Shown: positions 20,601-48,100 of the stretch, one piece after another
Layout: each line of letters opens with the position of its first letter
Position numbering within the stretch: the stretch's first letter is position 1
Assembly (NCBI GenBank): GCA_043228905.1
Contig: JBHGNT010000178.1
Location: 1 to 59,496, forward strand
DNA length: 59,496 nt
Source of the DNA: Azolla caroliniana
Lineage: Eukaryota; Plantae; Polypodiophyta
Reading direction: 5' to 3'
The notes under the pieces: generated by a model
Databases searched by the model: none
The model's input: the letters and a program-made list of their open reading frames with translations, nothing else
Told to the model about the DNA's origin: nothing
Made by a program: the position numbers and the translations under genes

Positions 20601-23600
20601 TTTCGTCATGTCTCTCGACCTGAGTTTCAAAATATTGATTTTTTAATTCTATATCATAGCTAGCGTTGTTAGCTTCGATTCGCATGTTTGAACACAAAAA
20701 TCTGATATGATACGAGCCAGGTATGAACATTTTAATTTACTCAAGGGCTCCTCTCAACTCACTCCTCAAATTTGGTAATTCCGTCATGTGTCTCGACCTG
20801 AGTTTCAAAATCTTGATTTTTTAATTCCGTATCATACCTAGCGTTGTTAGCTTCGATTCGCATGTTTGACCACAAAAATCCGATATCACACGAGCCAAGT
20901 ATGAACATTTTAATTTACCTCCTAGCTCTTCTCCACTCACTCCTCAAATTTGGTAATTTCTTCAAGTCTCTGGACCTGAGTTTCAAAATCTTGATTTTTT
21001 AATTCCATATCATAGCTAGCGTTGTTAGCTTCGATTCGCATGTTTGAACACAAAAATCCGATATCACACGAGCCAGGTATGAACTATTTAATTTACCTCC
21101 TAGCTCTTCTCAACTCACTCCTCAAATTTGGAAATTTTGTCATGTCTCTCGACCTGAGTTTCAAAATCTTGATTTTTTAATTCCATGTCATAGCTAGCGT
21201 TGTTAGCTTCGATTCGCATGTTTGAACACAAAAATCCGATATTACACGAGCCAGGTATGAACATTTTCATTTACTCAAGGGCTCCTCTCAACTCACTACT
21301 CAAATTTGGTAATTTCGTCATGTCTCTCGACCTGAGTTTCAAAATCTTGATTTTTTAATTCCATATCATAGCTAGCGTTGTTAGCTTCGATTCGCATGTT
21401 TGACCACAAAAATTCGATATCACAAAAGCCAGGTATGAACATTTTAATTTACCTCCTAGCGTTGTTAGCTTCGATTCGCATGTTTGAACACAAATATACG
21501 ATATCACATGAGCCAAGTATGAACTATTTAATTTACCTCCTAGCTCTTCTCAACTCACTCCTCAAATTTGGAAATTTTGTCATGTCTCTCGACCTGAGTT
21601 TCAAAATCTTGATTTTTTAATTCCATATCATAGCTAGCGTTGTTAGCTTCGATTCACATGTTTGAACACAAAAACCCTATATTACACGAGCCAGGTATGA
21701 ACATTTTAATTTACTCAAGGGCTCCTCTCAACTCACTCCTCAAATTTGGTAATTCCGTCATGTGTCTCGACCTGAGTTTCAAAATCTTGATTTTTTAATT
21801 CCGTATCATACCTAGCGTTGTTAGCTTCGATTCGGATGTTTGACCACAAAAATCCGATATCACACGAGCCAAGTATGAACATTTTAATTTACCTCCTAGC
21901 TCTTCTCCACTCACTCCTCAAATTTGGTAATTTCTTCATGTCTCTCGACCTGAGTTTCAAAATCTTGATTTTTTAATTCCATATCATAGCTAGCGTTGTT
22001 AGCTTCGATTCGCATGTTTGAACACAAAAATCCGATATAATACGAGCCAGGTATGAACATTTTGATTTACTCAAGGGCTCCTCTCAACTCACTCCTCAAA
22101 TTTGGTAATTCCGTCATGTATCTCGACCTCAGTGTCAAAATCTTGATTTTTTAATTCAATATCATAGGTAGCGTTGTTAGCTTCAATTCGCATGTTTGAA
22201 CACAAAAATCCGATATTACACGAGCCAGGTATGAACATTTTAATTTACTCAAGGGCTCCTCTCAACTCACTCCTCAAATTTGGTAATTACGTCATGTCTC
22301 TCGACCTGAGTTTCAAAATCTTGATTTTTTAATTCCATATCATAGCTAGCGTTGTTAGCTTCGATTCGCATGTTTGAACACAAAAATCCGATATTACACG
22401 AGCCAGGTATGAACATTTTCATTTACTCAAGGGCTCCTCTCAAGTCACTCCTCAAATTTGGTAATTTCTTCATGTCTCTCGACCTGAGTTTCAAAATCTT
22501 GATTTTTTAATTCCATATCATAGCTAGCATTGTTAGCTTCGATTCGCATGTTTGAACACAAATATACGATATCACACGAGCCAGGTATGAACTATTTAAT
22601 TTACCTCCTAGCTCTTCTCAACTCACTCCTCAAATTTGGAAATTTCGTCATGTCCCTCGACCTGAGTTTCAAAATCTTGATTTTTTAATTCCATATAATA
22701 GCTAGCGTTGTTAGCTTCGATTCGCATGTTTGAACACAAAAATCCGATATTACACGAGCCAGGTATGAACATTTTCATTTACTCAAGGGCTCCTCTCAAG
22801 TCACTCCTCAAATTTGGTAATTTCTTCATGTCTGTCGACCTGAGTTTCAAAATCTTGATTTTTTAATTCCATATCATAGCTAACGTTGTTAGCTTCGATT
22901 CGCATGTTTGAACACAAAAACCCTATATTACACGAGCCAGGTATGAACATTTTAAATTACTCAAGGGCTCCTCTCAACTCACTCCTCAAATTTGGTAATT
23001 CCGTCATGTATCTCGACCTGAGTGTCAAAATCTTGATTTGTTAATTCCATATCATAGGTAGCGTTGTTAGCTTCAATTCGCATGTTTGAACACAAAAATC
23101 CGATATTACACGAGCCAGGTATGAACATTTTAATTTACTCAAGGGCTCCTCTCAACTCACTCCTCAAATTTGGTAATTTCGTCATGTCTCTCGACCTGAG
23201 TGTCAAAATCTTGATTTTTTAATTCCATAAAATAGCTAGCGTTGTTAGCTTCGATTCGCATGTTTGAACACAAAAATTCGATATCACACAAGCCAGGTAT
23301 GAACATTTTAATTTACCTCCTAGCTCTTCTCAACTCACTCCTCAAATTTGGTGATTTCATCATGTCTCTCGATCTGAGTTTCAAAATCTTGATTTTTTAA
23401 TTCCATATCATAGCTAGCGTTGTTAGCTTCGATTCCCATGTTTGAACACAAAAATCCGATATGAGACGAGCCAGATATGAACATTTTAATTTACTCAAGG
23501 GCTCCTCTCAACTCACTCCTCAAATTTGGAAATTTCGTCATGTCTCTCGACCTGAGTTTCAAAATCTTGATTTTTTAATTCCATATCATAGCTAGCGTTG

Positions 23601-26030
23601 TTAGCTTCGATTCGCATGTTTCAACACAAAAATCCGATATTACACGAGCCAGGTATGAACATTTTGATTTACTCAAGGGCTCCTCTCAACTCACTACTTA
23701 AATTTGGAAATTTCGTCATGTCTCTCGACCTGAGTTTCAAAATCTTGATTTTTTAATTCCATATCATAGCTAGCGTTGTTAGCTTCGATTCGCATGTTTG
23801 AACACAAAAATCCGATATCACACGAGCCAGGTATGGACATTTTCATTTACCTCCTAGCTCTTCTCCACTCACTCCTCAAATTTGGTAATTTCTTCAAGTC
23901 TCTCGACCTGAGTTTTAAAATCTTGATTTTTTAATTTCATATCATAGCTAGCGTTGTTAGCTTCGATTCGCATGTTTGAACACAAAAATCCGATATGATA
24001 CGTGCCAGGTATGAACATTTTAATTTACTCAGGGCTCTTCTCAACTCACTCCACAAATTTGGAAATTTCGTCATGTCTCTCGACCTGAGTTTCAAAATCT
24101 TGATTTTTTAATTCCATATCATAGCTAGCGTTGTTAGCTTCGATTCGCATGTTTGAACCCAAAAATCCGATATAATACGAGCCAGGTATGAACATTTTAA
24201 TTTAGTCAAGGGCTCCTCTCAACTCACTCCTCAAATTCGGTAATTCCGTCATGTGTCTCGACCTGAGTTTCAAAATCTTGATTTTTTAATTCCGTATCAT
24301 ACCTAGCGTTGTTAGCTTCGATTCCCATGTTTGACCACAAAAATCCGATATCACACGAGCCAAGTATGAACATTTTAATTTACCTCCTAGCTCTTCTCCA
24401 CTCACTCCTCAAATTTGGTAATTTCTTCATGTCTCTCGACCTGAGTTTCAAAATCTTGATTTTTTAATTCCATATCATAGCTAGCGTTGTTAGCTTCGAT
24501 TCGCATGTTTGAACACAAAAATCCGATATTACACGAGCCAGGTATGAACATTTTCATTTACTCAAGGGCTCCTCTCAAGTCACTCCTCAAATTTGGTAAT
24601 TTCTTCATGTCTGTCGACCTGAGTTTCAAAATCTTGATTTTTTAATTCCATATCATAGCTAACGTTGTTAGCTTCGATTCGCATGTTTGAACACAAAAAC
24701 CCTATATTACACGAGCCAGGTATGAACATTTTAAATTACTCAAGGGCTCCTCTCAACTCACTCCTCAAATTTGGTAATTCCGTCATGTGTCTCGACCTGA
24801 GTTTCAAAATCTTGATTTTTTAATTCCGTATCATACCTAGCGTTGTTAGCTTCGATTCGGATGTTTGACCACAAAAATCCGATATCACACGAGCCAAGTA
24901 TGAACATTTTAATTTACCTCCTAGCTCTTCTCCACTCACTCCTCAAATTTGGTAATTTCTTCATGTCTCTCGACCTGAGTTTCAAAATCTTGATTTTTTA
25001 ATTCCATATCATAGCTAGCGTTGTTAGCTTCGATTCGCATGTTTGAACACAAAAATCCTATATTACACGAGCCAGGTATGAACATTTTGATTTACTCAAG
25101 GGCTCCTCTCAACTCACTCCTCAAATTTGGTAATTTCGTCATGTCTCTCGCCCTGAGTTTCAAAATCTTGCTTTTTTAATTCCATGTCATAGCTAGCGTT
25201 GTTAGCTTCGATTCGCATGTTTGAACACAAAAATCCGATATCACACGAGCTAGGTATGAACATTTTCGTTTACCCACTAGCTCGTCTTAACTCACTCCTC
25301 AAATTTGGTAATTTCATCATGTCTCTCGACCTGAGTTTCAAAATCTTGATTTTTTAATTCCATATCATAGCTAGCGTTGTTAGCTTCGATTCGCATGTTT
25401 GAACACAAAAATCCGATATCACACGTGCCAGGTATGAACATTTTAATTTACTCAAGGGCTCCTCTCAACTCACTCCTCAAATTTGGTAATTTCTTCATGT
25501 CTCTCGACCTGAGTTTCAAAATCTTGATTTTTTAATTCCATATCATAGCTAGCATTGTTAGCTTCGATTCGCATGTTTGAACACAAATATACGATATCAC
25601 ACGAGCCAGGTATGAACTATTTAATTTACCTCCTAGCTCTTCTCAACTCACTCCTCAAATTTGGAAATTTCGTCATGTCTCTCGACCTGAGTTTCAAAAT
25701 CTTGATTTTTTAATTCCATATCATAGCTAGCGTTGTTAGCTTCGATTCGCATGTTTGAACACAAAAATCCGATATTACACGAGCCAGGTATGAACATTTT
25801 CATTTACTCAAGGGCTCCTCTCAAGTCACTCCTCAAATTTGGTAATTTCTTCATGTCTGTCGACCTGAGTTTCAAAATCTTGATTTTTTAATTCCATATC
25901 ATAGCTAACGTTGTTAGCTTCGATTCGCATGTTTGAACACAAAAACCCTATATTACACGAGCCAGGTATGAACATTTTAAATTACTCAAGGGCTCCTCTC
26001 AACTCACTCCTCAAATTTGGTAATTCCGTC
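8664..26030. repeat. Nested higher-order duplications with periods of 1152, 7820 and 2660 bp
   Basis: The 84-bp truncated-monomer junction occurs at 9824, 10976, 17644, 18796, 20304 and 21456 (offsets 1152, 7820, 2660). 1152=6x178+84 and 2660=14x178+2x84. Later markers align at offset 9947 (=10480-533). Confidence 0.85.
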
Positions 26031-29000
26031 ATGTATCTCGACCTGAGTGTCAAAATCTTGATTTGTTAATTCCATATCATAGGTAGCGTTGTTAGCTTCA
26101 ATTCGCATGTTTGAACACAAAAATCCGATATTACACGAGCCAGGTATGAACATTTTAATTTACTCAAGGGCTCCTCTCAACTCACTCCTCAAATTTGGTA
26201 ATTCCGTCATGTGTCTCGACCTGAGTTTCAAAATCTTGATTTTTTAATTCCGTATCATACCTAGCGTTGTTAGCTTCGATTCGGATGTTTGACCACAAAA
26301 ATCCGATATCACACGAGCCAAGTATGAACATTTTAATTTGCCTCCTAGCTCTTCTCCACTCACTCCTCAAATTTGGTAATTTCTTCATGTCTCTCGACCT
26401 GAGTTTCAAAATCTTGATTTTTTAATTCCATATCATAGCTAGCGTTGTTAGCTTCGATTCGCATGTTTGAACACAAAAATCCTATATTACACGAGCCAGG
26501 TATGAACATTTTGATTTACTCAAGGGCTCCTCTCAACTCACTCCTCAAATTTGGTAATTTCGTCATGTCTCTCGCCCTGAGTTTCAAAATCTTGCTTTTT
26601 TAATTCCATGTCATAGCTAGCGTTGTTAGCTTCGATTCGCATGTTTGAACACAAAAATCCGATATCACACGAGCTAGGTATGAACATTTTCGTTTACCCA
26701 CTAGCTCGTCTTAACTCACTCCTCAAATTTGGTAATTTCATCATGTCTCTCGACCTGAGTTTCAAAATCTTGATTTTTTAATTCCATATCATAGCTAGCG
26801 TTGTTAGCTTCGATTCGCATGTTTGAACACAAAAATCCGATATCACACGTGCCAGGTATGAACATTTTAATTTACTCAAGGGCTCCTCTCAACTCACTCC
26901 TCAAATTTGGTAATTTCTTCATGTCTCTCGACCTGAGTTTCAAAATCTTGATTTTTTAATTCCATATCATAGCTAGCATTGTTAGCTTCGATTCGCATGT
27001 TTGAACACAAATATACGATATCACACGAGCCAGGTATGAACTATTTAATTTACCTCCTAGCTCTTCTCAACTCACTCCTCAAATTTGGAAATTTCGTCAT
27101 GTCTCTCGACCTGAGTTTCAAAATCTTGATTTTTTAATTCCATATCATAGCTAGCGTTGTTAGCTTCGATTCGCATGTTTGAACACAAAAATCCGATATT
27201 ACACGAGCCAGGTATGAACATTTTCATTTACTCAAGGGCTCCTCTCAAGTCACTCCTCAAATTTGGTAATTTCTTCATGTCTGTCGACCTGAGTTTCAAA
27301 ATCTTGATTTTTTAATTCCATATCATAGCTAACGTTGTTAGCTTCGATTCGCATGTTTGAACACAAAAACCCTATATTACACGAGCCAGGTATGAACATT
27401 TTAAATTACTCAAGGGCTCCTCTCAACTCACTCCTCAAATTTGGTAATTCCGTCATGTGTCTCGACCTGAGTTTCAAAATCTTGATTTTTTAATTCCGTA
27501 TCATACCTAGCGTTGTTAGCTTCGATTCGGATGTTTGACCACAAAAATCCGATATCACACGAGCCAAGTATGAACATTTTAATTTACCTCCTAGCTCTTC
27601 TCCACTCACTCCTCAAATTTGGTAATTTCTTCATGTCTCTCGACCTGAGTTTCAAAATCTTGATTTTTTAATTCCATATCATAGCTAGCGTTGTTAGCTT
27701 CGATTCGCATGTTTGAACACAAAAATCCGATATTACACGAGCCAGGTATGAACATTTTGATTTACTCAAGGGCTCCTCTCAACTCACTCCTCAAATTTGG
27801 TAATTTCGTCATGTCTCTCGCCCTGAGTTTCAAAATCTTGCTTTTTTAATTCCATGTCATAGCTAGCGTTGTTAGCTTCGATTCGCATGTTTGAACACAA
27901 AAATCCGATATCACACGAGCTAGGTATGAACATTTTCGTTTACCCACTAGCTCGTCTTAACTCACTCCTCAAATTTGGTAATTTCATCATGTCTCTCGAC
28001 CTGAGTTTCAAAATCTTGATTTTTTAATTCCATATCATAGCTAGCGTTGTTAGCTTCGATTCGCATGTTTGAACACAAAAATCCGATATCACACGTGCCA
28101 GGTATGAACATTTTAATTTACTCAAGGGCTCCTCTCAACTCACTCCTCAAATTTGGTAATTTCTTCATGTCTCTCGACCTGAGTTTCAAAATCTTGATTT
28201 TTTAATTCCATATCATAGCTAGCATTGTTAGCTTCGATTCGCATGTTTGAACACAAATATACGATATCACACGAGCCAGGTATGAATATTTTCATTTACT
28301 CAAGGGCTCCTCTCAAGTCACTCCTCAAATTTGGTAATTTCTTCATGTCTGTCGACCTGAGTTTCAAAATCTTGATTTTTTAATTCCATATCATAGCTAA
28401 CGTTGTTAGCTTCGATTCGCATGTTTGAACACAAAAACCCTATATTACACGAGCCAGGTATGAACATTTTAAATTACTCAAGGGCTCCTCTCAACTCACT
28501 CCTCAAATTTGGTAATTCCGTCATGTATCTCGACCTGAGTGTCAAAATCTTGATTTGTTAATTCCATATCATAGGTAGCGTTGTTAGCTTCAATTCGCAT
28601 GTTTGAACACAAAAATCCGATATTACACGAGCCAGGTATGAACATTTTAATTTACTCAAGGGCTCCTCTCAACTCACTCCTCAAATTTGGTAATTCCGTC
28701 ATGTGTCTCGACCTGAGTTTCAAAATCTTGATTTTTTAATTCCGTATCATACCTAGCGTTGTTAGCTTCGATTCGGATGTTTGACCACAAAAATCCGATA
28801 TCACACGAGCCAAGTATGAACATTTTAATTTGCCTCCTAGCTCTTCTCCACTCACTCCTCAAATTTGGTAATTTCTTCATGTCTCTCGACCTGAGTTTCA
28901 AAATCTTGATTTTTTAATTCCATATCATAGCTAGCGTTGTTAGCTTCGATTCGCATGTTTGAACACAAAAATCCGATATTACACGAGCCAGGTATGAACA

Positions 29001-29800
29001 TTTTGATTTACTCAAGGGCTCCTCTCAACTCACTACTTAAATTTGGAAATTTCGTCATGTCTCTCGACCTGAGTTTCAAAATCTTGATTTTTTAATTCCA
29101 TATCATAGCTAGCGTTGTTAGCTTCGATTCGCATGTTTGAACACAAAAATCCGATATCACACGAGCTAGGTATGAACATTTTCGTTTACCCACTAGCTCG
29201 TCTTAACTCACTCCTCAAATTTGGTAATTTCCTCATGTCTCTCGACCTGAGTTTCAAAATCTTGATTTCTTAATTCCATATCATAGCTAGCGTTGTTAGC
29301 TTCGATTCGCATGTTTGAACACAAATATACGATATCACACGAGCCAGGTATGAACTATTTAATTTACCTCCTAGCTCTTCTCAACTCACTCCTCAAATTT
29401 GGAAATTTCGTCATGTCTCTCGACCTGAGTTTCAAAATCTTGATTTTTTAATTCCATATCATAGCTAGCGTTGTTAGCTTCGATTCGCATGTTTGAACAC
29501 AAATATCCGATATCACACGAGCTAGGTATGAACATTTTCGTTTACCCACTAGCTCGTCTTAACTCACTCCTCAAATTTGGTAATTTCCTCATGTCTCTCG
29601 ACCTGAGTTTCAAAATCTTGATTTCTTAATTCCATATCATAGCTAGCGTTGTTAGCTTCGATTCGCATGTTTGAACACAAATATACGATATCACACGAGC
29701 CAGGTATGAACTATTTAATTTACCTCCTAGCTCTTCTCAACTCACTCCTCAAATTTGGAAATTTCGTCATGTCTCTCGACCTGAGTTTCAAAATCTTGAT
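24480..29800. repeat. Imperfect 7-8-monomer higher-order repeat region
   Basis: The variant GTTTACCCACTAGCTCGTCTTAAC has its CCC at 25273, 26697, 27943, 29189 and 29545 (spacings of 8, 7, 7 and 2 monomers). The TTTGCCTCC variant repeats at 2492 bp (14 monomers). Confidence 0.8.
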
Positions 29801-30405
29801 TTTTTAATTCCGTATCATACCTAGCATTGTTAGCTTCGATTCGCATGTTTGACCACAAAAATCCGATATCACACGAGCCAAGTATGAACATTTTAATTTA
29901 CCTCCTAGCTCTTCTCCACTCACTCCTCAAATTTGGTAATTTCTTCATGTCTCTCGACCTGAGTTTCAAAATCTTGATTTTTTAATTCCATATCATAGCT
30001 AGCGTTGTTAGCTTCGATTCGCATGTTTGAACACAAAAATCCTATATTACACGAGCCAGGTATGAACATTTTGATTTACTCAAGGGCTCCTCTCAACTCA
30101 CTCCTCAAATTTGGTAATTCCGTCATGTATCTCGACCTGAGTTTCAAAATCTTGATTTTTTAATTCCATATCAGAGCTAGCGTTGTTAGCTTCGATTCCC
30201 ATGTTTGAACACAAAAATCCGATATGATACGTGCCAGGTATGAACATTTTAATTTACTCAAGGGCTCCTCTCAACTCACTCCTCAAATTTGGAAATTTCG
30301 TCATGTCTCTCGACCTGAGTTTCAAAATCTTGATTTTTTAATTCCATATCATAGCTAGCGTTGTTAGCTACAATTCGTATGTTTGAACACAAAAATCCGA
30401 TATCA

Positions 30406-30437
30406 GGGTTTAGGGTTTAGGGTTTTTGGGTTTAGGG
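30406..30437 (+). repeat. Short interstitial telomeric sequence (GGG TTTAGGG TTTAGGG TTTTTGGG TTTAGGG) replacing monomer positions 53-151
   Basis: Reads ...CCGATATCA|GGGTTTAGGGTTTAGGGTTTTTGGGTTTAGGG|ATCTTGATTTTTT... The 32 bp replace 99 bp (modulo 178) of satellite. Confidence 0.97.
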
Positions 30438-33400
30438 ATCTTGATTTTTTAATTCCGTATCATACCTAGCGTTGTTAGGTTCGATTCGCATGTTTGACCA
30501 CAAAAATCCGATATCACACGAGCCAAGTATGAACATTTTAATTTACCTCCTAGCTCTTCTCCACTCACTCCTCAAATATGGTAATTTCTTCAAGTCTCTC
30601 GACCTGAGTTTCAAAATCTTGATTTTTTAATTCCATCTCATAGCTAGCATTGTTAGCTTCGATTCGCATGTTTGAACACAAAAATCCGATATCACACGAG
30701 CCAGGTATGAACTATTTAATTTACCTCCTAGCTCTTCTCAACTCACTCCTCAAATTTGGAAATTTTGTCATGTCTCTCGACCTGAGTTTCAAAATCTTGA
30801 TTTTTTAATTCCATGTCATAGCTAGCGTTGTTAGCTTCGATTCGCATGTTTGAACACAAAAATCCGATATCACACGAGCCAGGTATGAACTATTTAATTT
30901 ACCTCCTAGCTCTTCTCAACTCACTCCTCAAATTTGGAAATTTCGTCATGTATCTCGACCTGAGTTTCAAAATCTTGATTTTTTAATTCCATATCAGAGC
31001 TAGCGTTGTTAGCTTCGATTCCCATGTTTGAACACAAAAATCCGATATGATACGTGCCAGGTATGAACATTTTAATTTACTCAGGGCTCCTCTCAACTCA
31101 CTCCTCAAATTTGGAAATTTCTTGATGTCTCTCGACCTGAGTTTCAAAATCTTGATTTTTTAATTCCATATCATAGCTAGCATTGTTAGCTTCAATTCGC
31201 ATGTTTGAACACAAAAACCCTATATTACACAAGCCAGGTATGAACATTTTAATTTACTCAAGGGCTCCTCTCAACTCACTCCTCAAATTTGGTAATTCCG
31301 TCATGTATCTCGACCTGAGTTTCAAAATCTTGATTTTTTAATTCCATATCAGAGCTAGCGTTGTTAGCTTCGATTCCCATGTTTGAACACAAAAATCCGA
31401 TATCACACGTGCCAGGTATGAACATTTTCATTTACTCAAGGGCTCCTCTCAACTCACTACTCAAATTTGGTAATTTCGTCATGTCTCTCGACCTGAGTTT
31501 CAAAATCTTGATTTTTTAATTCCATATCATAGCTAGCGTTGTTAGCTTCGATTCGCATGTTTGAACACAAAAATCCGATATGATACGAGCCAGGTATGAA
31601 CTATTTAATTTACTCAAGGGCTCCTCTCAACTCACTCCTCAAATTTGGTAATTCCGTCATGTGTCTCGACCTGAGTTTCAAAATCTTGATTTTTTAATTC
31701 CGTATCATACCTAGCGTTGTTAGGTTCGATTCGCATGTTTGACCACAAAAATCCGATATCACACGAGCCAAGTATGAACATTTTAATTTACCTCCTAGCT
31801 CTTCTCCACTCACTCCTCAAATATGGTAATTTCTTCAAGTCTCTCGACCTGAGTTTCAAAATCTTGATTTTTTAATTCCATATCATAGCTAGCATTGTTA
31901 GCTTCGATTCGCATGTTTGAACACAAAAATCCGATATCACACGAGCCAGGTATGAACTATTTAATTTACCTCCTAGCTCTTCTCAACTCACTCCTCAAAT
32001 TTGGAAATTTTGTCATGTCTCTCGACCTGAGTTTCAAAATCTTGATTTCTTAATTCTATATCATAGCTAGCGTTGTTAGCTTCGATTCGCATGTTTGAAC
32101 ACAAAAATCCGATATTACACGAGCCAGGTATGAACATTTTCATTTACTGAAGGGCTCCTCTCAAGTCACTCCTCAAATTTGGTAATTTCGTCATGTCTCT
32201 CGACCTGAGTTTCAAAATCTTGATTTTTTAATTCCATATCATAGCTAGCGTTGTTAGCTTCGATTCGCATGTTTGAACACAAATATACGATATCACACGA
32301 GCCAGGTATGACCTATTTAATTTACCTCCTAGCTCTTCTCAACTCACTCCTCAAATTTGGAAATTTCGTCATGTCTCTCGACCTGAGTTTCAAAATCTTG
32401 ATTTTTTAATTCCATGTCATAGCTAGCGTTGTTAGCTTCGATTCGCATGTTTGAACACAAAAATCCGATATTACACGAGCCAGGTATGAACATTTTCATT
32501 TACTCAAGGGCTCCTCTCAAGTCACTCCTCAAATTTGGTAATTTCTTCATGTCTCTCGACCTGAGTTTCAAAATCTTGATTTTTTAATTCCATATCATAG
32601 CTAGCATTGTTAGCTTCGATTCGCATGTTTGAACACAAATATACGATATCATACGAGCCAGGTATGAACTATTTAATTTACCTCCTAGCTCTTCTCAACT
32701 CACTCCTCAAATTTGGAAATTTCGTCATGTCTCTCGACCTGAGTATCAAAATCTTGATTTTTTAATTCCATATCATAGCTAGCGTTGTTAGCTTCGATTC
32801 GCATGTTTGAATACAAAAATCCGATATTACACGAGCCAGGTATGAACATTTTCATTTACTCAAGGGCTCCTCTCAACTCACTACTCAAATTTGGAAATTT
32901 CGTCATGTCTCTCGACCTGAGTTTTAAAATCTTGATTTTTTAATTCCATATCATAGCTAGCGTTGTTAGCTTCGATTCGCATGTTTGAACACAAAAATCC
33001 GATATTACACGAGCCAGGTATGAACATTTTCATTTACTCAAGGGCTCCTCTCAACTCACTACTCAAATTTGGTAATTTCGTCATGTCTCTCGACCTGAGT
33101 TTCAAAATCTTGATTTTTTAATTCCATATCATAGCTAGCGTTGTTAGCTTCGATTCGCATGTTTGAACACAAAAATCCGATATTACACGAGCCAGGTATG
33201 AACATTTTCATTTACTCAAGGGCTCCTCTCAACTCACTACTCAAATTTGAAAATTTCGTCATGTCTCTCGACCTGAGTTTTAAAATCTTGATTTTTTAAT
33301 TCCATATCATAGCTAGCATTGTTAGCTTCGATTCGCATGTTTGAACACAAAAATCCGATATTACACGAACCAGGTATGAACATTTTCATTTACTCAAGGG

Positions 33401-35362: not shown

Positions 35363-38300
35363 TCTCAACTCACTCCTCAAATTTGGAAATTTCGTCATGT
35401 CTCTCGACCTGAGTTTCAAAATCTTGATTTTTTAATTCCATGTCATAGCTAGCGTTGTTAGCTTCGATTCGCATGTTTGAACACAAAAATCCGATATTAC
35501 ACGAGCCAGGTATGAACATTTTAATTTACTCAAGGGCTGCTCTCAACTCACTCCTCCAATTTGGTAATTCCGTCATGTGTCTCGACCTGAGTTTCAAAAT
35601 CTTGATTTTTTAATTCCGTATCATACCTAGCGTTGTTAGCTTCGATTCGCATGTTTGACCACAAAAATCCGATATCACACGAGCCAAGTATGAACATTTT
35701 AATTTACCTCCTAGCTCTTCTCCACTCACTCCTCAAATTTGGTAATTTCTTTATGTCTCTCGACCTGAGTTTCAAAATCTTGATTTTTTAATTCCATATC
35801 ATAGCTAGCGTTGTTAGCTTCGATTCGCATGTTTGAACACAAAAATCCTATATTACACGAGCCAGGTATGAACATTTTGATTTACTCAAGGGCTCCTCTC
35901 AACTCACTCCTCAAATTTGGTAATTCCGTCATGTATCTCGACCTGAGTTTCAAAATCTTGATTTTTTAATTCCATATCAGAGCTAGCGTTGTTAGCTTCG
36001 ATTCCCATGTTTGAACACAAAAATCCGATATAATACGTGCCAGGTATGAACATTTTAATTTACTCAAGGGCTCCTCTCAACTCACTCCTCAAATTTGGAA
36101 ATTTCGTCATGTCTCTCGACCTGAGTTTCAAAATCTTGATTTTTTAATTCCATATCATAGCTAGCGTTGTTAGCTTCAATTCGCATGTTTGAACACAAAA
36201 ATCCGATATCACACGAGCCAGGTATGGACATTTTCATTTACTCAAGGGCTCCTCCCCACTACTTCCTCAAGTTTGCTAATTTCATCATCTTTCTCGACCT
36301 GAGTGTCAAAATCTTGATTTTTTTATTCCATATCATAGCTAGCGTTGTTAGCTTCGATTCGCATGTTTGAACACAAAAATCCGATATTACACGAGCCAGT
36401 TATGAACATTTTCATTTACTCAAGGGCTCCTCTCAACTCACTCCTCAAATTTGGTAATTTCTTCATGTCTCTCGACCTGAGTTTCAAAATCTTGATTTTT
36501 TATTTCCATATCATAGCTAGCGTTGTTAGCTTCGATTCGCATGTTTGAACACAAAAATCCGATATAATACAAGCCAGGTATGAACATTTTAATTTACTCA
36601 AGGGCTCCTCTCAACTCACTCCTCCAATTTGGTAATTCCGTCATGTGTCTCGACCTGAGTTTCAAAATCTTGATTTTTTAATTCCGTATCATACCTAGCG
36701 TTGTTAGCTTCGATTCGCATGTTTGACCACAAAAATCCGATATCACACGAGCCAAGTATGAACATTTTAATTTACCTCCTAGCTCTTCTCCACTCACTCC
36801 TCAAATTTGGTAATTTCTTCATGTCTCTCGACCTGAGTTTCAGAATCTTGATTTTTTAATTCCATATCATAGCTAGCGTTGTTAGCTTCGATTCGCATGT
36901 TTGAACACAAAAATCCTATATTACACGAGCCAGGTATGAACATTTTGATTTACTCAAGGGCTCCTCTCAACTCACTCCTCAAATTTGGTAATTCCGTCAT
37001 GTATCTCGACCTGAGTTTCAAAATCTTGATTTTTTAATTCCATATCAGAGCTAGCGTTGTTAGCTTCGATTCCCATGTTTGAACACAAAAATCCGATATG
37101 ATACGTGCCAGGTATGAACATTTTAATTTACTCAAGGGCTCCTCTCAACTCACTCCTCAAATTTGGAAATTTCGTCATGTCTCTCGACCTGAGTTTCAAA
37201 ATCTTGATTTTTTAATTCCATATCATAGCTAGTGTTGTTAGCTTCAATTCGCATGTTTGAACACAAAAATCCGATATCACACGAGCCAGGTATGGACATT
37301 TTCATTTACTCAAGGGCTCCTCCCCACTACTTCCTCAAGTTTGCTAATTTCATCATCTTTCTCGACCTGAGTGTCAAAATCTTGATTTTTTAATTCCATA
37401 TCATAGCTAGCGTTGTTAGCTTCGATTCGCATGTTTGAACACAAAAATCCGATATTACACGAGCCAGTTATGAACATTTTCATTTACTCAAGGGCTCCTC
37501 TCCACTCACTCCTCAAATTTGGTAATTTCTTCAAGTCTCTCGACCTGAGTTTCAAAATCTTGATTTTTTAATTCCATATCATAGCTAGCGTTGTTAGCTT
37601 CGATTCGCATGTTTGAACACAAAAACCCTATATTACACGAGCCAGGTATGAACATTTAAATTTACTCAAGGGCTCCTCTCAACTCACTCCTCCAATTTGG
37701 TAATTCCGTCATGTGTCTCGACCTGAGTTTCAAAATCTTGATTTTTTAATTCCGTATCATACCTAGCGTTGTTAGCTTCAATTCGCATGTTTGACCACAA
37801 AAATCGGATATCACACGAGCCAAGTATGAACATTTTAATTTACCTCCTAGCTCTTCTCCACTCACTCCTCAAATTTGGTAATTTCTTCATGTCTCTCGAC
37901 CTGAGTTTCAAAATCTTGATGTTTTAATTCCATATCATAGCTAGCGTTGTTAGCTTCGATTCGCATGTTTGAACACAAAAATCCTATATTACACGAGCCA
38001 GGTATGAACATTTTAATTTAATCAAGGGCTCCTCTCAACTCACTCCTCAAATTTGGTAATTCCGTCATGTATCTCGACCTGAGTTTCAAAACCTTGATTT
38101 TTTAATTCCATATCAGAGCTAGCGTTGTTAGCTTCGATTCGCATGTTTGAACACAAAAATCCGATATCACACGAGCCAGGTATGGACATTTTCATTTACT
38201 CAAGGGCTCCTCCCCACTACTTCCTCAAGTTTGCTAATTTCATCATCTTTCTCGACCTGAGTGTCAAAATCTTGATTTTTTTATTCCATATCATAGCTAG

Positions 38301-41300
38301 CGTTGTTAGCTTCGATTCGCATGTTTGAACACAAAAATCCGATATTACACGAGCCAGTTATGAACATTTTCATTTACTCAAGGGCTCCTCTCAACTCACT
38401 CCTCAAATTTGGTAATTTCTTCATGTCTCTCGACCTGAGTTTCAAAATCTTGATTTTTTATTTCCATATCATAGCTAGCGTTGTTAGCTTCGATTCGCAT
38501 GTTTGAACACAAAAATCCGATATAATACAAGCCAGGTATGAACATTTTAATTTACTCAAGGGCTCCTCTCAACTCACTCCTCCAATTTGGTAATTCCGTC
38601 ATGTGTCTCGACCTGAGTTTCAAAATCTTGATTTTTTAATTCCGTATCATACCTAGCGTTGTTAGCTTCGATTCGCATGTTTGACCACAAAAATCCGATA
38701 TCACACGAGCCAGGTATGAACATTTTGATTTACTCAAGGGCTCCTCTCAACTCACTCCTCAAATTTGGTAATTCCGTCATGTATCTCGACCTGAGTTTCA
38801 AAATCTTGATTTTTTAATTCCATATCAGAGCTAGCGTTGTTAGCTTCGATTCCCATGTTTGAACACAAAAATCCGATATGATACGTGCCAGGTATGAACA
38901 TTTTAATTTACTCAAGGGCTCCTCTCAACTCACTCCTCAAATTTGGAAATTTCGTCATGTCTCTCGACCTGAGTTTCAAAATCTTGATTTTTTAATTCCA
39001 TATCATAAATCCGATATTACACGAGCCAGGTATGAACATTTTCATTTACTCAAGGGCTCCTCTCCACTACTTCCTCAAGTTTGCTAATTTCGTCATCTCT
39101 CTCGACCTGAGTTTCAAAATCTTGATTTTTTAATTCCATATCATAGCTAGCGTTGTTAGCTTCGATTCACATGTTTGAACACAAAAATCCGATATCACAC
39201 GAGCCAGGTATGGACATTTTCATTTACTCAAGGGCTCCTCTCCACTACTTCCTCAAGTTTGCTAATTTCGTCATCTCTCTCGACCTGAGTTTCAAAATCT
39301 TGATTTTTTAATTCCATATCATAGGTAGCGTTGTTAGCTTCAATTCGCATGTTTGAACACAAAAATCCGATATTACACGAGCCAGGTATGAACATTTTAA
39401 TTTACTCAAGGGCTCCTCTCAACTCACTCCTCAAATTTGGTAATTTCGTCATGTCTCTCGACCTGAGTTTGAACACAAATATACGATATCACACGAGCCA
39501 GGTATGAACTATTTAATTTACCTCCTAGCTCTTCTCAACTCACTCCTCAAATTTGGAAATTTCGTCATGTCTCTCGACCTGAGTATCAAAATCTTGATTT
39601 TTTAATTCCATATCATAGCTAGCGTTGTTAGCTTCGATTCGCATGTTTGAACACAAAAATCCGATATTACACGAGCCAGGTATGAACATTTTGATTTACT
39701 CAAGGGCTCCTCTCAAGTCACTCCTCAAATTTGGTAATTTCTTCAAGTCTCTCGACCTGAGTTTCAAAATCTTGATTTTTTAATTCCATATCATAGCTAG
39801 CGTTGTTAGCTTCGATTCGCATGTTTGAATACAAAAACCCTATATTACACGAGCCAGGTATGAACATTTTAATTTACTCAAGGGCTCCTCTCAACTCACT
39901 CCTCAAATTTGGTAATTCCGTCATGTATCTCGACCTGAGTTTCAAAATCTTGATTTTTTAATTCCATATCAGAGATAGCGTTGTTATCTTCGATTCCCAT
40001 GTTTGAACACAAAAATCCGATATCACACGTGCCAGGTATGAACATTTTCATTTACTCAAGGGCTCCTCTCAACTCACTACTCAAATTTGGTAATTTCGTC
40101 ATGTCTCTCGACCTGAGTTTCAAAATCTTGATTTTTTAATTCCATATCATAGCTAGCGTTGTTAGCTTCGATTCGCATGTTTGAACACAAAAATCCGATA
40201 TGATACGAGCCAGGTATGAACTATTTAATTTACTCAAGGGCTCCTCTCAACTCACTCCTCAAATTTGGAAATTTCGTCATGTCTCTCGACCTGAGTTTCA
40301 AAATCTTGATTTTTTAATTCCATGTCATAGCTAGCGTTGTTAGCTTCGATTCGCATGTTTGAACACAAAAATCCGATATTACACGAGCCAGGTATGAACA
40401 TTTTAATTTACTCAAGGGCTGCTCTCAACTCACTCCTCCAATTTGGTAATTCCGTCATGTGTCTCGACCTGAGTTTCAAAATCTTGATTTTTTAATTCCG
40501 TATCATACCTAGCGTTGTTAGCTTCGATTCGCATGTTTGACCACAAAAATCCGATATCACACGAGCCAAGTATGAACATTTTAATTTACCTCCTAGCTCT
40601 TCTCCACTCACTCCTCAAATTTGGTAATTTCTTTATGTCTCTCGACCTGAGTTTCAAAATCTTGATTTTTTAATTCCATATCATAGCTAGCGTTGTTAGC
40701 TTCGATTCGCATGTTTGAACACAAAAATCCTATATTACACGAGCCAGGTATGAACATTTTGATTTACTCAAGGGCTCCTCTCAACTCACTCCTCAAATTT
40801 GGTAATTCCGTCATGTATCTCGACCTGAGTTTCAAAATCTTGATTTTTTAATTCCATATCAGAGCTAGCGTTGTTAGCTTCGATTCCCATGTTTGAACAC
40901 AAAAATCCGATATAATACGTGCCAGGTATGAACATTTTAATTTACTCAAGGGCTCCTCTCAACTCACTCCTCAAATTTGGAAATTTCGTCATGTCTCTCG
41001 ACCTGAGTTTCAAAATCTTGATTTTTTAATTCCATATCATAGCTAGCGTTGTTAGCTTCAATTCGCATGTTTGAACACAAAAATCCGATATCACACGAGC
41101 CAGGTATGGACATTTTCATTTACTCAAGGGCTCCTCCCCACTACTTCCTCAAGTTTGCTAATTTCATCATCTTTCTCGACCTGAGTGTCAAAATCTTGAT
41201 TTTTTTATTCCATATCATAGCTAGCGTTGTTAGCTTCGATTCGCATGTTTGAACACAAAAATCCGATATTACACGAGCCAGTTATGAACATTTTCATTTA

Positions 41301-44300
41301 CTCAAGGGCTCCTCTCAACTCACTCCTCAAATTTGGTAATTTCTTCATGTCTCTCGACCTGAGTTTCAAAATCTTGATTTTTTATTTCCATATCATAGCT
41401 AGCGTTGTTAGCTTCGATTCGCATGTTTGAACACAAAAATCCGATATAATACAAGCCAGGTATGAACATTTTAATTTACTCAAGGGCTCCTCTCAACTCA
41501 CTCCTCCAATTTGGTAATTCCGTCATGTGTCTCGACCTGAGTTTCAAAATCTTGATTTTTTAATTCCGTATCATACCTAGCGTTGTTAGCTTCGATTCGC
41601 ATGTTTGACCACAAAAATCCGATATCACACGAGCCAAGTATGAACATTTTAATTTACCTCCTAGCTCTTCTCCACTCACTCCTCAAATTTGGTAATTTCT
41701 TCATGTCTCTCGACCTGAGTTTCAGAATCTTGATTTTTTAATTCCATATCATAGCTAGCGTTGTTAGCTTCGATTCGCATGTTTGAACACAAAAATCCTA
41801 TATTACACGAGCCAGGTATGAACATTTTGATTTACTCAAGGGCTCCTCTCAACTCACTCCTCAAATTTGGTAATTCCGTCATGTATCTCGACCTGAGTTT
41901 CAAAATCTTGATTTTTTAATTCCATATCAGAGCTAGCGTTGTTAGCTTCGATTCCCATGTTTGAACACAAAAATCCGATATGATACGTGCCAGGTATGAA
42001 CATTTTAATTTACTCAAGGGCTCCTCTCAACTCACTCCTCAAATTTGGAAATTTCGTCATGTCTCTCGACCTGAGTTTCAAAATCTTGATTTTTTAATTC
42101 CATATCATAGCTAGTGTTGTTAGCTTCAATTCGCATGTTTGAACACAAAAATCCGATATCACACGAGCCAGGTATGGACATTTTCATTTACTCAAGGGCT
42201 CCTCCCCACTACTTCCTCAAGTTTGCTAATTTCATCATCTTTCTCGACCTGAGTGTCAAAATCTTGATTTTTTAATTCCATATCATAGCTAGCGTTGTTA
42301 GCTTCGATTCGCATGTTTGAACACAAAAATCCGATATTACACGAGCCAGTTATGAACATTTTCATTTACTCAAGGGCTCCTCTCCACTCACTCCTCAAAT
42401 TTGGTAATTTCTTCAAGTCTCTCGACCTGAGTTTCAAAATCTTGATTTTTTAATTCCATATCATAGCTAGCGTTGTTAGCTTCGATTCGCATGTTTGAAC
42501 ACAAAAACCCTATATTACACGAGCCAGGTATGAACATTTAAATTTACTCAAGGGCTCCTCTCAACTCACTCCTCCAATTTGGTAATTCCGTCATGTGTCT
42601 CGACCTGAGTTTCAAAATCTTGATTTTTTAATTCCGTATCATACCTAGCGTTGTTAGCTTCAATTCGCATGTTTGACCACAAAAATCGGATATCACACGA
42701 GCCAAGTATGAACATTTTAATTTACCTCCTAGCTCTTCTCCACTCACTCCTCAAATTTGGTAATTTCTTCATGTCTCTCGACCTGAGTTTCAAAATCTTG
42801 ATGTTTTAATTCCATATCATAGCTAGCGTTGTTAGCTTCGATTCGCATGTTTGAACACAAAAATCCTATATTACACGAGCCAGGTATGAACATTTTAATT
42901 TAATCAAGGGCTCCTCTCAACTCACTCCTCAAATTTGGTAATTCCGTCATGTATCTCGACCTGAGTTTCAAAACCTTGATTTTTTAATTCCATATCAGAG
43001 CTAGCGTTGTTAGCTTCGATTCGCATGTTTGAACACAAAAATCCGATATCACACGAGCCAGGTATGGACATTTTCATTTACTCAAGGGCTCCTCCCCACT
43101 ACTTCCTCAAGTTTGCTAATTTCATCATCTTTCTCGACCTGAGTGTCAAAATCTTGATTTTTTTATTCCATATCATAGCTAGCGTTGTTAGCTTCGATTC
43201 GCATGTTTGAACACAAAAATCCGATATTACACGAGCCAGTTATGAACATTTTCATTTACTCAAGGGCTCCTCTCAACTCACTCCTCAAATTTGGTAATTT
43301 CTTCATGTCTCTCGACCTGAGTTTCAAAATCTTGATTTTTTATTTCCATATCATAGCTAGCGTTGTTAGCTTCGATTCGCATGTTTGAACACAAAAATCC
43401 GATATAATACAAGCCAGGTATGAACATTTTAATTTACTCAAGGGCTCCTCTCAACTCACTCCTCCAATTTGGTAATTCCGTCATGTGTCTCGACCTGAGT
43501 TTCAAAATCTTGATTTTTTAATTCCGTATCATACCTAGCGTTGTTAGCTTCGATTCGCATGTTTGACCACAAAAATCCGATATCACACGAGCCAGGTATG
43601 AACATTTTGATTTACTCAAGGGCTCCTCTCAACTCACTCCTCAAATTTGGTAATTCCGTCATGTATCTCGACCTGAGTTTCAAAATCTTGATTTTTTAAT
43701 TCCATATCAGAGCTAGCGTTGTTAGCTTCGATTCCCATGTTTGAACACAAAAATCCGATATGATACGTGCCAGGTATGAACATTTTAATTTACTCAAGGG
43801 CTCCTCTCAACTCACTCCTCAAATTTGGAAATTTCGTCATGTCTCTCGACCTGAGTTTCAAAATCTTGATTTTTTAATTCCATATCATAAATCCGATATT
43901 ACACGAGCCAGGTATGAACATTTTCATTTACTCAAGGGCTCCTCTCCACTACTTCCTCAAGTTTGCTAATTTCGTCATCTCTCTCGACCTGAGTTTCAAA
44001 ATCTTGATTTTTTAATTCCATATCATAGCTAGCGTTGTTAGCTTCGATTCACATGTTTGAACACAAAAATCCGATATCACACGAGCCAGGTATGGACATT
44101 TTCATTTACTCAAGGGCTCCTCTCCACTACTTCCTCAAGTTTGCTAATTTCGTCATCTCTCTCGACCTGAGTTTCAAAATCTTGATTTTTTAATTCCATA
44201 TCATAGGTAGCGTTGTTAGCTTCAATTCGCATGTTTGAACACAAAAATCCGATATTACACGAGCCAGGTATGAACATTTTAATTTACTCAAGGGCTCCTC

Positions 44301-45150
44301 TCAACTCACTCCTCAAATTTGGTAATTTCGTCATGTCTCTCGACCTGAGTTTGAACACAAATATACGATATCACACGAGCCAGGTATGAACTATTTAATT
44401 TACCTCCTAGCTCTTCTCAACTCACTCCTCAAATTTGGAAATTTCGTCATGTCTCTCGACCTGAGTATCAAAATCTTGATTTTTTAATTCCATATCATAG
44501 CTAGCGTTGTTAGCTTCGATTCGCATGTTTGAACACAAAAATCCGATATTACACGAGCCAGGTATGAACATTTTGATTTACTCAAGGGCTCCTCTCAAGT
44601 CACTCCTCAAATTTGGTAATTTCTTCAAGTCTCTCGACCTGAGTTTCAAAATCTTGATTTTTTAATTCCATATCATAGCTAGCGTTGTTAGCTTCGATTC
44701 GCATGTTTGAATACAAAAACCCTATATTACACGAGCCAGGTATGAACATTTTAATTTACTCAAGGGCTCCTCTCAACTCACTCCTCAAATTTGGTAATTC
44801 CGTCATGTATCTCGACCTGAGTTTCAAAATCTTGATTTTTTAATTCCATATCAGAGATAGCGTTGTTATCTTCGATTCCCATGTTTGAACACAAAAATCC
44901 GATATCACACGTGCCAGGTATGAACATTTTCATTTACTCAAGGGCTCCTCTCAACTCACTACTCAAATTTGGTAATTTCGTCATGTCTCTCGACCTGAGT
45001 TTCAAAATCTTGATTTTTTAATTCCATATCATAGCTAGCGTTGTTAGCTTCGATTCGCATGTTTGAACACAAAAATCCGATATGATACGAGCCAGGTATG
45101 AACTATTTAATTTACTCAAGGGCTCCTCTCAACTCACTCCTCAAATTTGG
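35363..45150. repeat. 4882-bp tandem duplication (28 monomers minus a 40-bp and a 62-bp deletion)
   Basis: Private variants and deletions repeat at a 4882 offset (39007/43889, 39470/44352; ORF pairs 36167/41049 and 38878/43760). 28x178-102=4882. Confidence 0.92.
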
Positions 45151-48100
45151 TAATTCCGTCATGTGTCTCGACCTGAGTTTCAAAATCTTGATTTTTTAAT
45201 TCCGTATCATACCTAGCGTTGTTAGGTTCGATTCGCATGTTTGACCACAAAAATCCGATATCACACGAGCCAAGTATGAACATTTAAATTTACCTCCTAG
45301 CTCTTCTCCACTCACTCCTCAAATATGGTAATTTCTTCAAGTCTCTCGACCTGAGTTTCAAAATCTTGATTTTTTAATTCCATATCATAGCTAGCATTGT
45401 TAGCTTCGATTCGCATGTTTGAACACAAAAATCCGATATCACACGAGCCAGGTATGAACTATTTAATTTACCTCCTAGCTCTTCTCAACTCACTCCTCAA
45501 ATTTGGAAATTTTGTCATGTCTCTCGACCTGAGTTTCAAAATATTGATTTCTTAATTCCATATCATAGCTAGCGTTGTTAGCTTCGATTCGCATGTTTGA
45601 ACACAAAAATCCGATATTACACGAGCCAGGTATGAATATTTTCATTTACTGAAGGGCTCCTCTCAAGTCACTCCTCAAATTTGGTAATTTCGTCATGTCT
45701 CTCGACCTGAGTTTCAAAATCTTCATTTTTTAATTCCATATCATAGCCAGCGTTGTTAGCTTCGATTCGCATGTTTGAACACAAATATACGATATCACAC
45801 GAGCCAGGTATGACCTATTTAATTTACCTCCTAGCTCTTCTCAACTCACTCCTCAAATTTGGAAATTTCGTCATGTCTCTCGACCTGAGTTTCAAAATCT
45901 TGATTTTTTAATTCCATGTCATAGCTAGCGTTGTTAGCTTCGATTCGCATGTTTGAACACAGAAATCCGATATTACACGAGCCAGGTATGAACATTTTCA
46001 TTTACTCAAGGGCTCTTCTCAAGTCACTCCTCAAATTTGGTAATTTCTTCATGTCTCTCGACCTGAGTTTCAAAATCTTGATTTTTTAATTCCATATCAT
46101 AGCTAGCGTTGTTAGCTTCGATTCGCATGTTTGAACACAAAAATCCTATATTACACGAGCCAGGTATGAACATTTTAATTTAATCAAGGGCTCCTCTCAA
46201 CTCACTCCTCAAATTTGGTAATTCCGTCATGTATCTCGACCTGAGTTTCAAAACCTTGATTTTTTAATTCCATATCAGAGCTAGCGTTGTTAGCTTCGAT
46301 TCCCATGTTTGAACACAAAAATCCGATATGATACGTGCCAGGTATGAACATTTTAATTTACTCAGGGCTCCTCTCAACTCACTCCTCAAATTTGGAAATT
46401 TCTTGATGTCTCTCGACCTGAGTTTCAAAATCTTGATTTTTTAATTCCATATCATAGCTAGCGTTGTTAGCTTCAATTCGCATGTTTGAACACAAAAATC
46501 CGATATCACACGAGCCAGGTATGGACATTTTCATTTACTCAAGGGCTCCTCTCAACTCACTCCTCAAATTTGGTAATTTCTTCATGTCTCTCGACCTGAG
46601 TTTCAAAATCTTGATTTTTTAATTCCATATCATAGCTAGCATTGTTAGCTTCGATTCGCATGTTTGAACACAAATATACGATATCACACGAGCCAGGTAT
46701 GAACTATTTAATTTACCTCCTAGCTCTTCTCAACTCACTCCTCAAATTTGGAAATTTCGTCATGTCTCTCGACCTGAGTTTCAAAATCTTGATTTTTTAA
46801 TTCCATGTCATAGCTAGCGTTGTTAGCTTCGATTCGCATGTTTGAACACAAAAATCCGATATTACACGAGCCAGGTATGAACATTTTCATTTACTCAAGG
46901 GCTCCTCTCAACTCACTACTCAAATTTGGTAATTTCGTCATGTCTCTCGACCTGAGTTTCAAAATCTTGATTTTTTAATTCCATATCATAGCTAGCGTTG
47001 TTAGCTTCGATTCGCATGTTTGAACACATAAATCCGATATGATACGAGCCAGGTATGAACATTTTAATTTACTCAAGGGCTCCTCTCAACTCACTCCTCC
47101 AATTTGGTAATTCCGTCATGTGTCTCGACCTGAGTTTCAAAATCTTGATTTTTTAATTCCGTATCATACCTAGCGTTGTTAGCTTCGATTCGCATGTTTG
47201 AACACAAATATACGATATCACACGAGCCAGGTATGAACTATTTAATTTACCTCCTAGCTCTTCTCAACTCACTCCTCAAATTTGGAAATTTCGTCATGTC
47301 TCTCGACCTGAGTTTCAAAATCTTGATTTTTTAATTCCATATGATAGCTAGCGTTGTTAGCTTCGATTCGCATGTTTGAACACAAAAATCCGATATTACA
47401 CGAGCCAGGTATGAACATTTTCATTTACTCAAGGGCTCCTCTCAACTCACTACTCAAATTTGGAAATTTCGTCATGTCTCTCGACCTGAGTTTTAAAATC
47501 TTGATTTTTTAATTCCATATCATAGCTAGCGTTGTTAGCTTCGATTCGCATGTTTGAACACAAAAATCCGATATTACACGAGCCAGGTATGAACATTTTC
47601 ATTTACTCAAGGGCTCCTCTCAACTCACTCCTCAAATTTGGTAATTTCTTCATGTCTCTCGACCTGAGTTTCAAAATCTTGATTTTTTAATTCCATATCA
47701 TAGCTAGCGTTGTTAGCTTCGATTCGCATGTTTGAACACAAAAATCCGATATAATACGAGCCAGGTATGAACATTTTAATTTACTCAAGGGCTCCTCTCA
47801 ACTCACTCCTCCAATTTGGTAATTCCGTCATGTGTCTCGACCTGAGTTTCAAAATCTTGATTTTTTAATTCCGTATCATACCTAGCGTTGTTAGCTTCGA
47901 TTCGCATGTTTGACCACAAAAATCCGATATCACACGAGCCAAGTATGAACATTTTAATTTACCTCCTAGCTCTTCTCCACTCACTCCTCAAATTTGGAAA
48001 TTTCGTCATGTCTCTCGACCTGAGTTTCAAAATCTTGATTTTTTAATTCCATGTCATAGCTAGCGTTGTTAGCTTCGATTCGCATGTTTGAACACAAAAA

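Follow-up and report, generated by a model that had tools for sequence, protein, structure and literature searches.

Short ITSs inserted during the repair of double-strand breaks are best described in mammals (Nergadze et al. 2007, PMC2246262). Those of primates are mostly shorter than 50 bp, 50-52% of them come with a deletion, and in-register nucleotides are usual (PMC2246262). In plants, the CL14/CL34-telomere junctions of potato show telomere repeats that directly follow a truncated satellite monomer (PMC3276127), and telomeres on incomplete satellite monomers are the normal state in potato, tobacco and Silene. In Arabidopsis, telomerase caps CRISPR-broken CEN178 satellite with a sharp boundary, as seen in fission neo-telomeres (10.64898/2026.07.24.740321). 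For CenTel and Telo-islands, seeding by telomerase healing, by break-induced replication (BIR) or by MMEJ has been proposed (10.64898/2026.05.10.723265). Sub-terminal telomere relics have been described in Pyricularia (PMC8381367), and neotelomeres followed by fusion in cancer genomes (PMC11293586). Natural, base-resolved records of telomerase acting at internal breaks are scarce in plants.

Here we analyse one stretch of DNA of 59,496 nucleotides (the window), in which a 178-bp satellite occupies 54.1 kb and then gives way to a plant-type terminal telomere that runs to the window end. Well inside the satellite lies a single telomeric tract of 32 bp. In its length and in the deletion that flanks it at the break, this scar is like the short ITSs of mammals. 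It differs from them in that its unit is the plant heptamer, that its surroundings are a tandem satellite close to the end of a chromosome and that the pre-insertion state is read from paralogues. The description in PMC2246262 does not include imperfect pairing where the ends are rejoined, and no sequence derived from telomerase RNA is seen in the scar. As in the potato junctions and the CEN178 neo-telomeres, the join between telomere and truncated monomer is abrupt, at both junctions of the window; however, those telomeres are terminal and kilobases long, whereas the tract described here is internal, 32 bp long and followed by more satellite. The likeness to CenTel is that telomere repeats abut a truncated 178-bp satellite monomer, but CenTel forms domains of 69-484 kb with degenerate islands of ~180 bp, whereas we see one unamplified, nearly perfect tract. 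Finally, the scar is short, sub-terminal, in the terminal orientation and free of a target-site duplication, as are the Pyricularia relics and the cancer neotelomere-fusions; unlike in those cases, where another locus was captured or fused beyond the tract, the same satellite domain lies on both sides. Overall, it looks like a real, single, base-resolved repair event of a known kind, in a setting (the subtelomeric satellite of what is probably a non-seed plant) for which few have been described. Its novelty lies in the imperfect register where the satellite was rejoined, a detail that is statistically borderline. The features on which the analysis draws are collected in Table 1.

Table 1. Features of the scar, its surroundings and the terminal telomere (positions in the window; consensus positions refer to the 178-bp monomer; the stroke in TCA/GGG marks the junction)
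Feature	Position	Strand	Description
Seam between proximal homogenised and distal fine-mosaic domains	28900..31310	+	encloses the scar, which lies away from the proximal edge
Left flank	29776..30405	+	3.5 monomers from a higher-order block of the distal domain; truncated at consensus 96
Two rare substitutions	30370..30378	+	35 bp and 27 bp upstream of the left junction
Left junction TCA/GGG	30403..30408	+	A at 30405 common to satellite and telomere phase
Telomeric tract (32 bp)	30406..30437	+	two perfect heptamers, 8-nt variant, perfect heptamer, GGG
Variant third unit	30420..30427	+	8 nt, five T, no A; found in 0/770 terminal-array units
Tract end in imperfect register	30427..30437	+	against satellite consensus 7-17: 6 identities, 4 G-T wobble pairs, 1 mismatch
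Right flank	30438..30776	+	satellite restarts at consensus 18; distal-domain monomer type
Terminal satellite-telomere junction TCA/GGG	54105..54110	+	abrupt, at consensus 147; the next 30 units are perfect
Terminal telomere array	54108..59496	+	770 heptamer units, 26 variants; reaches the window end

A single telomeric tract joined out of register

The satellite of the window divides into 299 anchor-to-anchor segments that represent 160 sequence types. A literature search found no paper describing it, and it has no matches in prokaryotic genomes. A metagenome contig of 1 kb, found with a satellite 37-mer, resembles the satellite over its first ~90 bp and is non-satellite over the rest; it appears to hold the border of a satellite array from host plant DNA.

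Throughout the 54.1 kb of satellite, the tract is the only place where the telomere heptamer occurs on either strand, and any 14-nt stretch of telomere differs from the consensus monomer at 5-6 positions or more. The 20-mer across the right junction is unique in the window even at 3 mismatches, where none is expected (100 shuffles). The tract is real in the assembly, and a short, near-exact internal telomere tract of this sort is beyond chance. An earlier reading of this DNA from the sequence only had described it as four full telomere units plus GGG. The GGG and the four units are there, but only three of the units are perfect, the third being an 8-nt variant; the variant may be an extra-T unit whose final A later became T. 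The extra-T form is also the commonest variant of the terminal array (7 of the 770 units). The same reading correctly placed the tract in the orientation of the terminal telomere, both being G-rich on the + strand; the G-rich strand of the tract points toward that telomere, which begins at 54108, ~24 kb away. It was equally right that no target-site duplication is present at the tract edges. The insert is telomeric sequence only, with no foreign filler, and a search for Rfam families in 29.5-31.5 kb gave no match.

Two origins were rejected, a transposon insertion and a telomere-telomere fusion. Head-to-head telomere arrays and a strand switch, the marks of a fusion, are lacking: the satellite region has no C-strand heptamers, and satellite orientation and GC skew are the same on both sides of the tract.

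The satellite halts at consensus position 96 and restarts at 18, which is 99 bp out of register. This join effectively refutes an origin in situ, in which a point mutation would make a heptamer within the satellite and slippage would expand it, as in the first CenTel step. Single telomere motifs do arise by point mutation in Arabidopsis CEN178, but the chance of several motifs per monomer by mutation alone is negligible (10.64898/2026.05.10.723265). In addition, no other monomer of the window holds a heptamer, the satellite is unlike telomere at the left junction and 99 bp are missing, so that we give this origin almost no credence.

The terminal telomere itself lacks a degenerate transition zone, and its variants are clustered past 57.7 kb. 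Four extra-T units at 15-bp spacing (57780-57832) are possibly a small higher-order repeat or a consensus error.

The two junctions

At the left junction the microhomology is 1 nt (the shared A), a match expected by chance in 27% of cases, and the inserted DNA starts with GGG. The same TCA/GGG is found at the terminal junction, whose breakpoint is 54107/54108. The chance that two ends share their last three bases is 0.024, or 0.086 given that both end in A, and we regard the shared TCA as suggestive only. Perfect telomere matches of 2-4 nt are on offer at 53 of the 178 positions of the monomer, and neither junction uses one. Therefore, an enzyme with a preferred template start fits better than annealing of DNA to DNA. 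Fitzgerald and colleagues are said to have observed in 2001 that some plant telomerases start at a preferred template position in vitro. If the bases 3' of the telomerase RNA template continued with UGA, as they do in Arabidopsis, this would account for TCA at both junctions; our literature search found no fern or lycophyte telomerase RNA template sequence.

The unused matches also bear on an explanation that involves no telomerase, namely that 32 nt of telomere, either the one 24 kb away or another, were copied or captured in the course of polymerase-theta-type end joining, with a switch back to the satellite afterwards. Template switching is known in this array, both from a patchwork filler and from seams with 1-4 nt of microhomology (see the last section), and microhomologies of 0-3 nt at new telomeric sites in cancer genomes have been read as possible capture (PMC11293586). 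However, the sources of the templated fillers in the array are no more than a monomer or two away, and the 2-4 nt of microhomology normally expected of such a mechanism contrast with the 1 nt that was used. Moreover, the variant unit is missing from the terminal array, and the orientation of a filler would be free, which makes the observed one a 50% coincidence. We consider a DNA-templated filler unlikely.

Just upstream of the left junction, two substitutions had been called private. This is true of 30370 (T>A), whereas 30378 (C>T) recurs in one further monomer, the one starting at 6150. At the rate of the array, two such rare variants within 96 bp have a chance of 0.007-0.017; they are what would be expected if the end had been resected.

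At the right junction, where no clear microhomology had been noticed, perfect terminal microhomology is indeed absent, yet the junction is not homology-free. An ungapped alignment can be made between the final 11 nt of the tract and the 11 bases found, in every paralogue, just ahead of the point where the satellite resumes; its 4 wobble positions would be G-T pairs with the bottom strand of the satellite. This imperfect register is the best of 178 for tails of 10-12 nt, and in a ranking by DNA duplex energy it is tied best at 11 nt and second at 15 nt. After correction for tail length, scoring and telomere phase, the register has p = 0.022-0.037, in a test devised post hoc; we therefore see about even odds that wobble pairing at the right end was causal. 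Some support for the register comes from the array itself, which reuses the consensus 5-13 motif at two other rearrangement seams: in the 116-bp monomers it provides the 4-nt microhomology, and in the six-copy patchwork filler the first piece.

Flanks, domains and the size of the change

Paralogous monomers that continue intact on both sides make the pre-insertion state readable, the paralogues standing in for an orthologous empty allele. The left 630 bp differ by 5 mismatches from four distal copies (ending at 36211, 37279, 41093 and 42161), compared with 21 mismatches in the next best match and at least 21 in any proximal copy. All four intact copies run on as satellite, into a different monomer type. 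On the right, 161 bp are identical to copies at 31683, 34709 and 52198, and 339 bp show 1 difference from the copy at 31683. Each of the six copies of the right-flank monomer type is preceded by a type that differs from the left monomer, and the left and right types are never neighbours elsewhere in the window. Thus, the break likely joined positions that were not adjacent, and more than 99 bp probably changed. The statement that 99 bp of a monomer had been replaced therefore holds for the register, but the true size is 99 + 178n. Probably, either several monomers were lost (~3.0 kb, by the shortest intact path, from 42161 to 45185) or ~1.5 kb were re-copied (from 36211 to 34709). A plain deletion of 99 bp is the lesser possibility; it keeps an appreciable minority share of our belief because the distal domain switches haplotype in register every ~220 bp. 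We looked for a long tandem duplication whose seam would be the tract and found none in the window: similarity of the flanks to other copies extends over 630 bp to the left and ~340 bp to the right.

The scar falls within the seam between two satellite domains. Sharing of rare 60-mers across a boundary reaches its minimum at ~29-30.5 kb. Monomer by monomer, the proximal domain ends at ~28.9 kb, and the sequence is of distal type from 29776, before the tract, which puts the switch of repertoire ~1.5 kb upstream of it. The two domains differ in texture: 22000-28900 is composed of long near-identical blocks (mean ~1150 bp), and 31400-54100 is a fine in-register mosaic (mean ~220 bp), except for a 4.9-kb duplication.

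The domain structure is most relevant to the proposal that the tract is an eroded former chromosome end, which later captured 24 kb of satellite. In explicit form, the chromosome would once have ended at 30405, its healed telomere would have eroded or broken 32 bp from the base, and break-induced replication, by invasion of the stub into the sister, the homologue or another end, would have restored ~24 kb and a telomere. Such a former end would have the same orientation and the same TCA/GGG register as the present one (chance ~0.09, both ending in A), and it would lie within a seam of two separately homogenised domains, as the scar does; relics of this kind are those described in Pyricularia (PMC8381367). 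However, the left 630 bp already have the distal repertoire, so the distal 24 kb are not foreign to the left side. Since distal-type sequence starts upstream of the tract, the DNA on its two sides belongs to one lineage. The distal domain, with its fine mosaic, was not recently copied from anything in the window. Furthermore, a telomerase-positive plant would have had to lose >99% of a 5.4-kb telomere, for which a second event at a precise position is required. We also looked for capture of DNA from another locus starting at the tract and found none, in a test that is blind to capture from the sister or homologue. Taken together, these points disfavour a former chromosome end, including its version with an invading stub, and we hold either to be rather unlikely.

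Read-level data

Public sequencing data comprised 22 runs, as short-read unitigs only, and four of them were compared with 30200-30680. Neither junction is bridged by any of the unitig pieces listed, and pure-telomere unitigs (31-mers) could account for the depth inside the tract. In one other sample, unitig depth is zero just to the right of the tract, and in another it is zero in the 3' half of the tract. This missing depth is compatible with a polymorphic or private scar, and the samples may differ in genotype. The 26-mer of the left junction is absent from metagenome contigs, as expected of a single-copy plant locus.

The same data could be taken to mean that the scar is a chimera of assembly or library, made when a sheared satellite-telomere fragment was ligated or mis-assembled to another satellite fragment: no listed unitig piece spans a junction, and the tract interior or the right junction is uncovered in two other samples. 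Absence from unitigs, however, proves nothing, and a chance ligation would be at odds with both flanks coming from one local domain and with the non-random register of the right junction. For these two reasons we consider a chimera very improbable.

How the scar may have formed

Our preferred reading, to which we give slightly more than even credence, is that the satellite broke, was briefly extended by telomerase and was rejoined within the same array. It starts from the observed anatomy, single copy, orientation, flank identities and register statistics of the tract; from these we infer telomerase as the writer, the order of the steps, the part played by wobble pairing and the size of the loss. 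The distal satellite domain would first have suffered a double-strand break that exposed a 3' end finishing in TCA. Telomerase may then have used the final A to align this end on its template and synthesised ~4.4 repeats, one of them with an extra T. The short G-rich tail would then have been rejoined before a telomere was established, its partner being the other broken end or the sister chromatid, in the same array. The tail would probably have annealed imperfectly at the telomere-like motif of the satellite (consensus 7-17), and end joining or template-switch synthesis could have completed the repair, leaving a net change of 99 bp modulo 178.

Several observations favour break, telomerase extension and rejoining. 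The insert is purely telomeric, and its G-strand is directed away from the centromere-side end, as telomerase writes. The 1-nt in-phase microhomology and the start with GGG recur exactly at the terminal junction. Plant telomerase errs most often by adding an extra T (PMC2794166), which is also the commonest variant of the terminal array. Length and flanking deletion are like those of break-associated short ITSs in mammals. Moreover, both flanks come from the same distal domain, and the register at the right end is the best of 178. Several other points weaken this reading. It concerns a single event, and the 27% chance of the 1-nt match applies. A tail whose 3' end forms three G-T pairs primes poorly. 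Finally, a purely telomeric tract bears no mark that would separate telomerase from DNA-templated copying or from a Penelope-like reverse transcriptase (RT).

The last of these writers deserves a separate comment, as endonuclease-less Penelope-like elements are a class known for attachment to G-rich overhangs. In an abortive insertion, such an RT could have been primed on the broken satellite end and copied only telomere-like motifs at the 3' end of its RNA. Alternatively, it could have extended a short telomerase seed before rejoining. However, the insert contains no ribozyme, pseudo-LTR, RT or other element sequence, and we regard both versions as quite unlikely.

The sequence-only reading had already proposed that the arm broke, was briefly extended by telomerase and was rejoined. 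The anatomy fits that proposal, and it is the best reading of the locus, with telomerase as the probable writer. It overlooked two rival writers of the tract, DNA-templated filler synthesis and endonuclease-less Penelope-like elements. Its further suggestion of repeated cycles of breakage, healing and satellite re-extension is not borne out by the window, which has only one internal scar. The terminal junction adds little evidence for cycles, since a telomere on a truncated satellite monomer is an ordinary state in plants.

The satellite setting has the advantage that neighbouring monomers supply the pre-break sequence, which makes both junctions readable. A single event changes little; its value is that of one data point in a genome-wide tally of tract starts and satellite resumption points, by which one could test whether telomerase feeds the turnover of satellites at chromosome ends. 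Tandem amplification of a telomere-satellite hybrid unit, which defines CenTel, is not seen here, as the tract is present in a single copy in the window. The scar resembles an unamplified seed state, and the CenTel work says that such a seed needs more than point mutation. A more far-reaching idea is that telomerase-added repeats act as a recombination primer, the G-rich tail wobble-pairing with the motif present in every monomer and so restarting synthesis. We put this forward as a speculation that is improbable on present evidence. If it were true, telomerase would routinely pass broken satellite ends to end joining or break-induced replication, and the resulting scars would mark the borders of satellite domains that evolve separately and would give rise to hybrid repeats of telomere and satellite. 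In that case, many internal tracts of the genome would begin with TCA/GGG, with the satellite resuming at or near consensus 7-18.

Other rearrangement seams in the array

The array also carries a number of other rearrangements. The 4.9-kb duplication of the distal domain is an exact or near-exact tandem duplication of 4882 bp (35404-45167), and each of its copies holds deleted monomers of 138 and 116 bp. At 39466-39470 and 44348-44352, a 62-bp deletion shows 4 nt of microhomology between consensus 10-13 and 72-75; the motif used there is the one that stands in register at the right junction of the scar.

Monomers of 217/218 bp contain the patchwork filler, assembled from consensus 5-13, 68-72 and 50-57, after which the sequence continues from 121 onward. 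One such filler is located at 1284-1314, and copies are present near 2212, 4030, 4825, 7000 and 7930, six in all. This structure looks like the product of multi-step template switching in end joining, amplified afterwards. Out-of-register seams recur at 9820, 10972, 17640, 18792, 20300 and 21452, and also at 8578 and 48839. They involve segments of 262, 84 and 251 bp with 2-3 nt of microhomology, and the 262-bp type has been amplified six times.
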